Origin: Amoeboradix gromovi X-113
Taxonomy: Eukaryota > Fungi > Sanchytriomycota
Direction: 5' to 3'
Assembly: GCA_018985225.1 (NCBI GenBank)
Contig: JADGIF010000289.1
Location: 1 to 11,621, forward strand
DNA: 11,621 nucleotides
Shown: piece by piece, positions 780 through 10,681 of the stretch
Position numbering within the stretch: position 1 is the first letter of the stretch
Layout of the letters: every line of letters begins with the position of its first letter
Position numbers and translations under genes: made by a program
The notes under the pieces: model-generated
Told to the model about the DNA's origin: nothing
What the model saw: only the letters and a program-made list of their open reading frames with translations
Databases searched by the model: none

Positions 780-2293
780 ATGAATCTCACTCTCAATGCA
801 TTAGAGGAAAGCCCACGTCAAACGTCAAAAAAGATAATTAAAAACGAGCCTTTTACGGCAATAGACCTGTCCAACATGGGTTTAAAGGCACTGTCATTGA
901 ATTTATACAAATGGTACACTTTTTTGTCGGTCATTAACATAAGTAACAATCAATTGCGGATATTGTCACCTATGATCTCTGAGCTTACACAGCTGGTGTA
1001 TCTTGATTTATCAAGTAATCAGTTGCAGCGTCTTCCTCCAGAACTGGGTCTACTATCTCAATTGCAAACATTATACTTGCACGACAATCTGCTAACTAGT
1101 CTACCACATGAGCTAGGTATGCTGTACCAGCTGAACAAACTCACACTTGATAACAATCCGTTGGCTGATATCATTTTTCAAATAGAAAAACAATCTTGCT
1201 CACAACTTATTCATTACTTAAGAGACAATGCTCCTAAATCTGCAGCACCCGAAGCTAGAACTTGGGATCCCAGCCTTAAAGATCCTTGTAACTTTACGAT
1301 ACTTTCGTATAACATTTTAGCTCAAAAGTATGCTCGCCCTAAACTTTACGGCTACACGCCCAACTGGGCTTTGGATTGGATGTATAGGAGAGATAAGATT
1401 ATGTCTGAATTGTCGCTGTATAAGCCTGATATAATCTGTTTGCAGGAGGTCGAACATGGTGAGTTTGATTCTTATTTTTCTCCCAAGTTGGCAAACTTAT
1501 CAAGTGTATCATACAAAGGCGTGTTTTTTCAAAAGTCAAGAGCTAAGACCATGAGCGATGTGGATAAAAAATCTGTCGACGGCTGTGCTATATTTGCTAG
1601 AATGGACAAATTTGATATTCAAAGCCAGCACTTATTGGAGTTCAACGAATTAGCACTGAAACAGCACTACTTAGACAAGACAGACAGTTTGTTTACTAGA
1701 CTTATGCAAAGAGATAACATTGCAGTTGTTGCAATGTTGAGACATAGGCATACCCATATCCCATTATGGGTAGTTAACTGCCATATTCATTGGGACCCAA
1801 ATTTTAATGATGTGAAGATACTGCAAACTGCTATAATGTTGGAGGAAGTAGCTAAACTGGTAGGAAACCACCCCCTAATAATATGTGGTGATTTTAATTC
1901 TACTCCGGACTCGGCTGTTGTTACTTTGATGACAGAAAAGAAGCTTTCTGGAGAGCATCCTGAATTACTTGGAATTGATTACGGTGAATCATTGAAGACC
2001 CACGGACTGAAGAATAGATTGCAATCTCTTTCAAATGCTTATGAACATAATATACTGCCATTTACAAATTATACCCCCGGCTTTAAAGGTGTGATTGACT
2101 ATATATTTTATTCAGATAGACTATTACAAGTTTGTGAGACTTTAGGCGGAATTGGGAAAGAGTATTATTCAAAGTATGTTGGATTTCCAAACGCGCATTT
2201 ACCGTCAGAGTATTCAATATCTAATGTAGTCATATAAGCCTTATTGCCGAGTTTAAGATTAGCCAGACAACAATAAAGCAATTTCATTCTTAG
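780..2293 (+). CDS. CCR4: CCR4/CNOT6 poly(A) deadenylase (LRR + EEP nuclease); exons 780-2209 and 2230-2293, 497 aa
   Basis: N-terminal leucine-rich repeats (LDLSSNQLQRLPPELGLL). EEP motifs SYNILAQKYA, DIICLQEVE, HIHWDP, CGDFNS, FTNYTPGFKGVIDYIFYS. Removing the 20-nt intron restores the catalytic PSDH motif (PSDHISLIAEF) and ends at TAG 2291-2293. Confidence 0.96.
2210..2229 (+). other. 20-nt spliceosomal intron in CCR4 (phase 2)
   Basis: GTATTCAATATCTAATGTAG: GT..AG ends, CTAAT branch motif. Removal joins GA|T to give the Asp of the invariant SDH motif. Confidence 0.93.
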
Positions 2294-2329
2294 TTTATAA
2301 TCTTTTTTAATCCCGTGAAACTACTGCTT

Positions 2330-3723
2330 ATGCAAGAGGATTCAATGAATTTTAATAATGTTGTACATTATCTAGCTTCAGAATTTAAAAAATTTGAACG
2401 GGAGAGGCTCGAATGGCAAATTGAGAAAAATGCACTACTTGATAAGATAGCAGTAATGGAAGGAGAGAAAAGAGCTCTGCAGCATTTAAACAAGGATATG
2501 CATAATAAGCTAGTGCTATCTACGGGCAAAATCGAGAAACCCAACATTAATATAATAAAGAAAAAGGAAGAAACTAGGCAACTACTTTATAATTTTATGA
2601 GAGAGGCTAAGCAATTGGCAACTACTCCTTTTGAACAGCAAAATGAAAGATCTAATGAGACTTTGATAGAGTCATACCCTAAGTCATATTACAATATGGA
2701 GGAATTGGACGACTTGGCAACAATAAAGGTGGAAGATTTAAAGAAAGAAAAAAGGTCTTGGCGATCAAGCTTGAATTACAGGTCTCATTTTGATGTAGTT
2801 AGAAGCGTGCTGTTTATTGATCATTACCATTTCCTCTCTTTGGGTGACGATGGATGTGCCAAAGTGTGGAATTTGAAATCCGAGGATCCATTCAGATGCT
2901 TTAGAGCAGCGTCCCCACTTATTTCTGGTACTATAATGAGTACAGCTTTATATGGGTCAGAAAATGTGGCTATTTGTGGTGACTTAGTCGGCAGATTACA
3001 CATGTTTAAAATTGATACCAGTAGACCTGTAGAGGATTACCCAAATTACGATAAATCCTTCAGATTGTTTGAGAATAAGGAGCACACTGATTCAATATGG
3101 GATATAGCATCATTTGATAAACAGTCAAAGTTCGTTAGTGTTAGCAGTGATACTTCGGTTAGACTATGGGACTTAAAAGCGAGTGGAATATCTCATTTGC
3201 ACTCTATCACCAGTAGCTACATACTAATATAGTAGATGGTCAGATTCCTACCACTGTGTCTGCCTCTAACCATTTAAATGACACTCTGTACGTTGGGTTC
3301 AATTCCGGGCAACTGAGAGCCATAGAGTTAGCTACTGGTACTGCACTAGACACAATAAGTGCTAGCGCAGAACCTGGTATCCAAATCAATCAGATCAGAA
3401 CACACCCTACTGAGAATCTACTTGGGTGTGCCATGGATGATAAAACTCTTGTTTTAGTTGATCCTAGGCAAGAAAACACAGTCACCAGGATTAATGCACA
3501 CACAGATAGTGTTACAAGCGTTGCATTTCATAGCAATAGCTGCATAACTGGTAGCCATGATGGTAGTGTAAGAATATGGGATCTAACAACAAGGACTTGC
3601 GTTCAAGAGTTTACAGCTCACAGAAAGAAGTTTGATGAATCAGTCTGCAACTTGGACTGCATGGGTGACTCTCTGTTAAGCTGCGGAGCGGACGGACTAA
3701 TTAAATACTTCTCTCTACTGTGA
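2330..3723 (+). CDS. Striatin / Far8-like STRIPAK scaffold (N-terminal coiled coil + WD40); exons 2330-3212 and 3233-3723, 457 aa
   Basis: Striatin N-terminus VVHYLASEFKKFERERLEWQIEK...KIAVMEGE; WD start RSHFDVVR; C-terminal SGSHD-like TGSHDGSVRIW...VQEFTAHRKKFDESV. The two ORF-track ORFs join in frame through a 20-nt intron. Confidence 0.93.
3213..3232 (+). other. 20-nt spliceosomal intron in striatin (phase 1)
   Basis: GTAGCTACATACTAATATAG. Removal gives ...SITIDGQIPTTVS..., in frame with ORF 3256-3723. A second in-frame TAG acceptor follows at 3233-3235. Confidence 0.9.
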
Positions 3724-3744
3724 TTTACCTTATAGAAAAATAAA

Positions 3745-4026
3745 TTAAATATTTCTTTTATTTAGATACGCTTGTTCTAATTCTTTGTCATACATCATGG
3801 TTGGTATCCAAGTGTCTGGTACTCGCGGTCTTATTTCTAGTTTTCTGCCCCATTGAAATACGGAATAGCAAACAATTGTTGATAGACCAAGAATGAAAAC
3901 GAAATTAGTCTTCCAATGCTTGGTTTGAGTATACGCACCACCAGTGGGAGACCATATGTACTTGGGCAATAAGCTCTCTGGTGGAGGACGAGAACCATAT
4001 TTGGTGCTACTTCTCCAGAAATTCAT
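3745..4026 (-). CDS. Small single-TM mitochondrial complex I accessory subunit (fungal ~10 kDa 'PKHVWSPAGGW' family), 93 aa
   Basis: PKYIWSPTGGAYTQTKHWKTN, then a TM helix, then WIPTMMY, resembling the PK.VWSP.GGW...NW..NT...WIPS pattern. Start moved to ATG 4026 because the ORF-track extension runs into repeat copy 3. Confidence 0.75.
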   Translation of the reverse strand: MNFWRSSTKYGSRPPPESLLPKYIWSPTGGAYTQTKHWKTNFVFILGLSTIVCYSVFQWGRKLEIRPRVPDTWIPTMMYDKELEQAYLNKRNI

Positions 4027-9206: not shown

Positions 9207-9216
9207 TAAACCCCCT

Positions 9217-9450
9217 ATGTCAAACAATAAACCAAAGTCATCTGTCTTTCAGCTTGATTCTTTGTTAAATGAGCCTGTTTGGGTAGATTGTGTCGGCGAT
9301 CATGTTGTAGAAGGCACTTTAAAAGGTTTTGATCAACTACTGAATTTAAATATCGAGAATGGTGTATTTGACGGAAATGCTGTAGGAAATTTGATTGTAC
9401 GAGGTCCAAGCGTTACTTCGGTGCTCCATAATGTTAATAAACTGGATTGA
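9217..9450 (+). CDS. LSM7: Sm-like protein, most like LSM7, 77 aa
   Basis: N-terminal KPKSSVFQL (cf. KKESILDL), Sm1 motif GTLKGFDQLLNL, Sm2 motif GNLIVRGPSV. SmG is the alternative assignment. Confidence 0.75.
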   Translation: MSNNKPKSSVFQLDSLLNEPVWVDCVGDHVVEGTLKGFDQLLNLNIENGVFDGNAVGNLIVRGPSVTSVLHNVNKLD

Positions 9451-9533
9451 TGTTATTTTTCTTGTAGCTGTTTTGAGAACCGAAAGAGACTTAATGCGGA
9501 AAAGTGAACGTCAACAATATTTATTTGCAAAAC

Positions 9534-10681
9534 TTAAAAGCATTTTCGGTGAACAATGCTTGGTCCAGATTCGTCGTATTCTTGTTTTGAGATCCACATT
9601 TGTTGGAAGGTAGACAAAGAAGCAAGGATAGATCCTCCAATCCATACAGAGTACTTTCTCTCTGGTGGAGCAACAATCTTGACCTTCATAGATGATGGTG
9701 CCAAAGCAGTGATTTCTCTACGTTAATGATGTAATACTTCTGCATTCTGTCTGCAATTCCAGGGTACATAGTAGTACCACCAGACATAACGATGTTACCG
9801 TACAAATCTTTACGGATATCAACATCACACTTCATGATTGAAGAGTAAGTGGTTTGATGAATACCAGCTGCTTCCATTCCCAAGAATGATGGTTGAAACA
9901 ATGCTTCTGGACATCTGAATCTTTCATTACCAATAGTGATGACTTGACCATCAGGTAATTCGTATTGTTTTTCAATTGAACTAGATTGTGCAGCAGTCTG
10001 CATTTCTTGTTGAAAGTCCAAAGCGACGTAAGCCAACTTTTCTTTAATATCTCTTACGATTTCACGCTCAGCAGATGTAGTAAAGGTGTAACCACGTTCG
10101 GTCATAATCTTTGCCAAGTAATCTGTCAAGTCACGTCCAGCCAAATCTAATCGCATAATAGCATGAGGAAGTGCATATCCTTCATAAATTGGAACTGTGT
10201 GGGTAACACCATCTCCAGAGTCCAAAACAATACCTGTAGTTCTACCAGATGCATACAAAGACAATACAGCTTGGATAGCAACATAAAATGCAGGTGTGTT
10301 GAAGGTTTCAAACAAAATTTGTGTCATTTTCTCTCTGTTAGCCTTTGGGTTCAATGGTGCTTCGGTCAATAATGTTGGGTGCTCTTCTGGTGCGACTCTC
10401 AACTCGTTGTAAAAAGTATGATGCCAGATTTTTTCCATATCATCCCAATTTGTAACAATACCGTGCTCAATTGGGTATTTTAAGGTTAAGATTCCTCTCT
10501 TTGACTGAGCTTCATCTCCAACGTAGCTGTCTTTTTGTCCCATTCCAACCATAATACCTTGATGTCTTGGTCGACCAACAATACTTGGGAATACAGCTCT
10601 TGGAGCATCATCTCCAGCAAAACCGGCTTTACACATACCAGATCCGTTATCAATAACCAATGCAGAAACTTCTTGGCTCAT
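9534..10681 (-). CDS. ACT1: Actin; exons 10681-9738 and 9717-9534, 375 aa
   Basis: [40 protein letters not shown]. After intron removal: [65 protein letters not shown]-stop. Spliced length 1128 nt gives the canonical 375 aa. Confidence 0.99.
9718..9737 (-). other. 20-nt spliceosomal intron in actin (phase 2, codon 315)
   Basis: Minus strand GTATTACATCATTAACGTAG. Removal restores the invariant MQKEIT with no residue gained or lost. Confidence 0.97.

Follow-up and report, generated by a model that had tools for sequence, protein, structure and literature searches.

Introduction

Spliceosomal introns of extremely small size have been described from the ciliate Stentor coeruleus (15–16 nucleotides (nt); PMC9505925), from chlorarachniophyte nucleomorphs (18–21 base pairs (bp); PMC6009652) and from the parasite Mikrocytos mackini (16–17 nt; PMC10245619). 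On the fungal side, the closest case is the microsporidian Encephalitozoon cuniculi, whose introns span 22–76 nt (PMC3629993, PMC2483917), and 22 nt, in a microsporidian, is also the shortest fungal-side intron that we found reported (PMC3629993).

Here we analyse an 11,621-nt stretch of genomic DNA from the alga-parasitising sanchytrid fungus Amoeboradix gromovi X-113 (contig JADGIF010000289.1; hereinafter the window), in which the genes for the CCR4/CNOT6 deadenylase, striatin and actin are each interrupted by a 20-nt sequence. A first-pass annotation of the window had read these sequences as introns of fixed length built on one pattern (a GTA donor, a YTAAY branch motif and a terminal AG). 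The published assembly (10.5 Mb, 36% GC) was annotated by running TransDecoder on genomic contigs, and introns are not discussed in that paper (PMC8371127); no report of sanchytrid introns was found in the searchable literature, whose coverage leaves out most subscription papers. The three 20-mers are almost certainly real U2-type introns, judging from their ends, reading frames and orthologues, and we assign a probability of roughly 0.7 to the fuller reading that they are U2-type introns shrunk to 19–21 nt, anchored at their 3′ ends and accommodated by adapted Isy1 and Cwc25 proteins.

Predicted introns in the CCR4, striatin and actin genes

The exon junctions were pinned by aligning each exon separately against homologues, which yields the following features:

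780..2209, + strand: CCR4/CNOT6 deadenylase exon 1 (LRR and EEP nuclease), assigned by Pfam LRR and Exo_endo_phos, homologues and the junction
2210..2229, + strand: predicted CCR4 intron, 20 nt, U2-type, putative branch A at 2224 (–6)
2230..2293, + strand: CCR4 exon 2, with the catalytic His of PSDH and the C-terminus
2345..3212, + strand: striatin exon 1, with the Striatin domain (Pfam PF08232) and first WD40 repeats, phase 1
3213..3232, + strand: predicted striatin intron, 20 nt, U2-type, putative branch A at 3227 (–6)
3233..3723, + strand: striatin exon 2 (WD40 repeats)
9738..10681, – strand: actin exon 1, phase 2 end, within the Lys codon of MQKEIT
9718..9737, – strand: predicted actin intron, 20 nt, U2-type, putative branch A at 9723 (–6)
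9534..9717, – strand: actin exon 2 (last 60 residues)

All three 20-mers lie where the first-pass annotation had placed them and fit its pattern, which matches the window three times compared with 0.01 expected from shuffling, with the caveat that the pattern was built from these same three sequences. As it had also proposed, the CCR4 and actin introns are pinned by invariant motifs. CCR4 exon 1 ends in phase 2 within the Asp codon of PSDH, with PS at its end and HI at the opening of exon 2, and joining the split codon restores PSDH as in other fungi, giving a 497-amino-acid (aa) protein after predicted splicing. Aligned to a 376-aa actin, exon 1 extends to residue 315 and exon 2 begins at residue 317, the residue in between being the Lys whose codon is split, and the predicted spliced product is 375 aa long. 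The striatin intron restores the WD40 reading frame, the two exons being contiguous when aligned to a relative's protein; the gene has an additional in-frame ATG at 2330. GT and AG ends together with a restored reading frame assign all three to the U2 type, and we are highly confident that they represent introns that are spliced in A. gromovi. The CCR4 and striatin 20-mers are unchanged in the source run's contig, which is not independent evidence, and a relaxed scan of the window returned no additional convincing intron.

Orthologous introns and their origin

The same genes are interrupted at identical codons in three relatives, two of them uncultured and known from ENA metagenomes (CCR4 identity 87% and 78%) and the third recovered from Logan contigs. 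The intron ends and branch motif are kept in these relatives while the interior and the length vary. The CCR4 intron is 20 nt long here and 19 nt in each of two relatives; the striatin intron is 20 nt here, 21 nt in relative L013 and 19 nt in L015/L016; and the actin intron is 20 nt here versus 19 nt in L042/L043, where it carries a GTC donor and a CTGAT branch motif. The 21-nt striatin intron (L013:15562–15582) is in frame and stop-free and is concealed in a seemingly intact open reading frame (ORF). We considered and rejected the 465-aa single striatin ORF of L013 as an intron-free gene, since the stop-free intron is simply read through.

These comparisons bear on whether the 20-mers are introns at all. 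In a draft assembly, short interruptions could also stem from programmed frameshifts, from pseudogenisation or from errors made in assembly or amplification, an explanation that is scarcely credible when independent metagenome assemblies of three other species carry inserts of differing length with conserved ends at the same codons, and when the exons that follow are themselves intact, the final 60 residues of actin among them.

Among Blastocladiomycota, the intron at the CCR4 position measures 146 nt in Paraphysoderma and 66 nt in Blastocladiella emersonii; Spizellomyces has none there. Because a 66–146-nt intron occupies the same site in Blastocladiomycota, the CCR4 intron, at least, appears to be ancestral and shrunken. 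The same site argues against two further origins. HAC1/hacA introns of filamentous fungi, removed outside the spliceosome, are about 20 nt long, and removal of the sanchytrid introns by an Ire1-type or tRNA-endonuclease-type activity would account for their similar size. This is very improbable given the GT–AG ends, the U2-complementary branch motif, the normal long spliceosomal intron at the CCR4 site in Blastocladiella and Paraphysoderma, and the fact that the three introns, taken in isolation, do not fold; an Ire1-cleaved intron of the HAC1/XBP1 type was also considered and set aside, as it needs non-GT–AG ends in conserved stem-loops. Recent insertion by intron-generating transposons (introners) is the least probable origin of all: the narrow length range and a single 20-mer recurring on seven contigs are what introners might leave behind, but the interiors are otherwise unrelated, positions are common to several species, and the CCR4 intron is older than the divergence from Blastocladiomycota. 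Many near-identical copies at new, species-specific positions, the hallmark of introners, were not found.

Genome-wide length distribution and number

The whole genome (10.55 Mb) was scanned for the intron pattern, and local statistics were drawn from ~230–250 kb. In its 20-nt form the pattern has 107 matches genome-wide versus 26 for the reversed control, and in a 19-nt form it has 182 versus 43. For variable-gap patterns the reversed control was too high, and off-peak lengths served as background instead. Among the first 100 variable-length matches, 35 fall at 19 nt, 20 at 20 nt, 8 at 21 nt and 0–7 at each other length, with lengths of 18 nt or less near background; by hand tally, the background-subtracted shares are ~57% for 19 nt, ~27% for 20 nt and ~16% for 21 nt. 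A motif-free scan of 226 kb for frame-restoring GT–AG pairs also peaks at 19 and 20 nt, part of the scanned loci having been picked by the 20-nt motif, and 30 of 37 motif matches of 19–21 nt rescue the reading frame.

A spliceosome that measures a fixed 20 nt, with the branch A at position 15, was the explanation first offered for the window, and it draws on the agreement of all three window introns at 20 nt and on the narrow range of lengths. The genome scan proposed as its check, with a sharp mode at 20 nt as the expected outcome, instead places the mode at 19 nt, and the striatin site holds 19, 20 and 21 nt in three species. No length exceeds 90% of the total, as one does in Stentor and Mikrocytos. 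Three of three introns at 20 nt has a chance of ~2% per window, which is unremarkable over ~700 windows, and matches in which the 5′-to-branch distance is constant and the AG is shifted are near background. A 20-nt ruler is therefore highly unlikely; the length-measuring spliceosome is refuted as originally stated, and only a looser range of 19–21 nt survives.

After background subtraction there are ~440 strict motif matches, and with variants allowed for we estimate a total of 700–1000 introns, or ~0.1 per gene. Frame rescue identified 30 introns, and 29 of them fall within the 3′ half of the coding sequence (median relative position ~0.83), in a test that is blind to first exons shorter than 60 nt; intron-poor genomes usually show a 5′ bias (PMC9505925). 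Separately, an identical 20-nt intron-like sequence occurs on seven contigs (C442, C576, C620, C672, C1019, C1053 and C1057), probably as part of a multicopy gene or repeat, and slightly inflates the 20-nt count.

Branch site and splice-site consensus

With two variable spacers in the pattern, the branch A stood at –6 in 63 of the first 100 matches (31, 16 and 10 of them at 19, 20 and 21 nt, respectively), compared with ~2–3 matches per cell and a maximum of 7 for other branch-to-end spacings (hand tally). Matches in which the 5′-to-branch distance was held and the AG moved stayed near background. In the motif-free scan, an A stands at –6 in 25 of 27 candidates of 19–22 nt versus 90 of 180 others. 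By these counts the putative branch A keeps a fixed distance from the 3′ end (–6) and thus falls at intron position 14, 15 or 16. The constant position 15 proposed earlier holds for all three window introns and breaks down genome-wide.

The consensus is wider than the pattern derived from the window, reading GTA(A/T), an AT-rich spacer and (C/T)T(A)A(T/C)N(T)AG. The donor has no G at +5 and exon position –1 shows no preference for G, in line with the earlier description of a donor barely longer than GTA and of introns devoid of a polypyrimidine tract. At the sequence level, the YTAAY motif, with its A at –6, is complementary to U2 GUAGUA, as expected of a branch site, and its fixed distance to the AG in the absence of a polypyrimidine tract matches an architecture described previously (PMC2483917). 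We also considered the U12-type (minor) class, defined by an RTATCCTT donor and a TCCTTAAC branch site, and rejected it, donor positions +4 to +8 being variable.

Spliceosomal RNAs and core proteins

The pairing sites of the small nuclear RNAs (snRNAs) are canonical in U1 (5′ ACUUACCU), U2 (GUAGUA), U5 (loop 1) and U6 (ACAGAGA and AGC), so that no remodelled RNA core is needed. Judged by sequence, the footprint of U1 would reach to about +6 to +8 and that of U2 would begin at about +9 in a 19-mer, so that the two adjoin without overlap. The genome encodes a near full-length Prp8 (2209 aa), U2AF65, SF1, U1-70K, U1-C, Yju2, Isy1, Cwc25 and Dbr1; with U1, U2, U5 and U6 these amount to a major spliceosome. 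The SF1 gene is interrupted by a 19-nt intron of its own, in the KH loop. U2AF65 (L047:1480–2727, – strand) keeps three RRM/UHM domains and has no RS domain, despite introns lacking a polypyrimidine tract.

The normally invariant stretch of the U2 snRNA (L012:1501–1695) that links helix Ia to the branch-pairing region contains one extra U. We rejected this insertion as an adaptation to tiny introns, as it is present in five unrelated metagenome contigs; the GC-rich marine and fungal-like contigs that carry it show no 19–21-nt motif peak.

Slu7 was blank both in a Pfam search and in a motif search, and the search for Prp18 gave a spurious match only. Slu7 is dispensable for branch-to-3′ distances of up to 9 nt (PMC10158995), and its non-detection fits a branch-to-AG distance below the range that requires it. 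The inventory suggested by the first-pass annotation thus finds U1, U2, U6, U2AF65, SF1 and Prp8 in place and the SF3b1 N-terminal model blank; a 929-aa HEAT frame is the likely SF3B1.

Altered N-termini of Isy1 and Cwc25

In yeast, the N-termini of Isy1 and Cwc25 contact the branch helix (10.1101/2020.09.22.306647), and both ends are changed in sanchytrids. Sanchytrid Isy1 (in A. gromovi encoded on contig C123 and 100% identical to EP00835_Amoeboradix_gromovi_P007158) lacks the MARNxEK start found in 73 of 114 other matches, the remainder of which are mostly calls from an internal Met; the first 11 residues of human Isy1 have no counterpart, and the protein instead begins with an extended segment of acidic character. 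In one alignment there appears to be a 22-residue extension ahead of a diverged RN motif. Nowhere is the protein more conserved than in the new segment, at 89% identity across five sanchytrids versus 57–79% elsewhere, and the codon changes of this segment comprise 23 synonymous and 3 non-synonymous, a pattern indicating that it is under purifying selection as a new feature. Cwc25 starts with GRNLN in place of the GDLN shared by 122 of 126 homologues, and its conserved second Trp, Trp24, is replaced by Met, with a second sanchytrid-like sequence in agreement.

The earlier expectation of altered spliceosome components is borne out for these two N-termini and fails for the U1, U2, U5 and U6 pairing sites. 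Whether the changes have to do with intron size at all is the point on which the most serious competing explanation turns, namely that the tiny introns are real and the spliceosome is functionally unmodified, the states of Isy1, Cwc25, Slu7 and Prp18 reflecting fast evolution or assembly gaps. It agrees with the canonical pairing sites, with a Prp8 of almost full length and with the retention of the U1 proteins, as well as with the general divergence of sanchytrid proteins, the non-specific extra U in U2, and the losses of Cwc25, Slu7 and Prp18 in lineages that have no tiny introns (PMC10158995). Against it stand the strong conservation of the new Isy1 segment, unmatched in the rest of its protein, and the N-termini of the same two proteins in Stentor, which are likewise non-conserved (PMC9505925). 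We consider an unmodified spliceosome unlikely, while giving it far more weight than any other alternative.

Proposed mechanism

In the reading that we prefer, the introns would be ordinary major-spliceosome introns reduced to 19–21 nt by genome compaction, each read as a single small unit starting at the 3′ end. There SF1 and U2, the latter through GUAGUA, would bind the branch motif, the AG five bases downstream would be used without a polypyrimidine tract, and U1 and U6 would recognise GUA(A/U) only. Branching would produce a lariat with a loop of 14–16 nt and a tail of 5 nt, for Dbr1 to open. Two factors would determine length, a steric floor at about 19 nt and a pressure towards shrinkage, and together they account better than a ruler for a distribution with almost nothing below 19 nt and a short tail on the longer side. 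In yeast and human structures the ends of Isy1 and Cwc25 clamp the branch helix, and their changed forms in sanchytrids would most likely accommodate the tight loop, an adaptation suggested by correlation alone, and Slu7 and Prp18 may be lost since the branch-to-AG distance is under the range requiring them. The stronger proposition, that the spliceosome is specifically adapted to 19–21 nt, with Isy1 and Cwc25 rebuilt convergently with Stentor, Slu7 and Prp18 lost and the 3′ bias functional, is tentative and on balance doubtful; if true, the Isy1 and Cwc25 N-termini would be the parts that set minimum intron length.

Several points weigh against the preferred reading. A search for RNA runs returned only the source DNA run, which showed no exon joints. 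The Isy1 and Cwc25 changes are a correlation in a lineage that evolves fast, and AlphaFold models the new Isy1 segment with low confidence (pLDDT, the predicted local distance difference test score, 38–54). The Slu7 and Prp18 negatives are weak, coming from a draft assembly in which the Pfam model for the N-terminus of the near-universal SF3b1 was blank as well. Finally, a few candidates of 28–70 nt persist in the motif-free scan, and longer introns are possible.

Consequences for annotation

The first-pass annotation had warned that such introns break gene models, and the public EukProt CCR4 is indeed a 485-aa read-through, corresponding to the unspliced ORF of the window; its closest named relative is that of Sanchytrium tribonematis, at 76%. 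Because TransDecoder was run on genomic contigs (PMC8371127), an estimated 700–1000 genes would be truncated or split, including those for actin, CCR4 and SF1, and 21-nt introns will be translated unnoticed in public sanchytrid proteins. Truncated proteins in turn affect gene-loss claims and phylogenomic matrices.

Other features of the window

Gene packing is dense, with gaps down to ~10 bp; a SNARE gene and two Sm/Lsm genes lie beside actin (8919–9450 and 11152–11412). The order CCR4, striatin, small gene, ankyrin (780–5906) is preserved in L015, whereas in L013 a TIP120 gene lies between CCR4 and striatin. A dispersed repeat of ~170 bp, with copies 85–88% identical, occurs in the window at 1–174, 410–589 and 4109–4276, with at least 14 further copies in ~240 kb of other loci (L002, L004, L018, L019, L024, L031, L033, L034, L036, L039, L041 and L052) and probably hundreds genome-wide; it resembles a short interspersed element or a miniature inverted-repeat transposable element, and an Rfam search gave no match. 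Positions 11544–11621, at the contig end, repeat the actin start region (10662–10739) in inverted orientation and without a mismatch over 78 bp, probably as an amplification or assembly end artefact.

Comparison with known tiny-intron systems

Introns this short are already known elsewhere; what is new here is the lineage, the 3′ positional bias and the named candidate adaptations, that is, the Isy1 and Cwc25 N-termini and Slu7/Prp18. At 19–21 nt, the sanchytrid introns are shorter than any fungal introns that we found reported, and this alga-parasitising fungus and its relatives very probably form an independent near-minimal intron lineage, the first that we found among non-microsporidian fungi. 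With its largely complete spliceosome, the fungus is directly comparable to yeast on the question of what limits the minimum size of an intron.

The closest resemblance is to Stentor (PMC9505925), whose introns share GT–AG ends, a GTA donor, a branch A at –6 with a 5-nt tail, AT-richness, canonical snRNAs and non-conserved Cwc25 and Isy1 N-termini. Stentor introns are shorter, 93% are of one length, and they combine a weak branch consensus with a 5′ positional bias, whereas the sanchytrid introns have a clear branch motif and a 3′ bias; Stentor being a ciliate, the two have independent origins, in agreement with the earlier proposal that ultra-short GT–AG introns evolved independently in a fungal lineage. 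Nucleomorph introns cover a nearly equal length range and number ~900, at ~3 per gene, in a relict nucleus and with no discernible branch adenosine (PMC6009652), compared with ~0.1 per gene, a free nuclear genome and a fixed branch motif here. Mikrocytos is likewise a parasite with introns of narrow length and conserved sequence (PMC10245619), but has 17–19 spliceosomal proteins and only U2, U4 and U6 found, while U1, U5, U1-70K, U1-C, U2AF65 and SF1 are retained in the sanchytrid.

E. cuniculi shares GT–AG ends and has a CTAAYTT branch motif, and differs in having only ~35 introns, which are longer and variable, with a strong donor and a heavily reduced spliceosome (PMC3629993, PMC2483917). 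Trichomonas, Giardia and Yarrowia resemble the sanchytrid in their intron-poor genomes, lack of a polypyrimidine tract and set branch-to-AG distance, and depart from it in strong donors and longer or variable introns (PMC2483917). The introns of myxobolid myxozoans and Dicyema (median 22–27 bp; PMC13644364) offer a parallel, having likewise shrunk at ancestral positions in association with parasitism and carrying reduced splice motifs, although these are animals, and their introns are somewhat longer and more broadly distributed in length.

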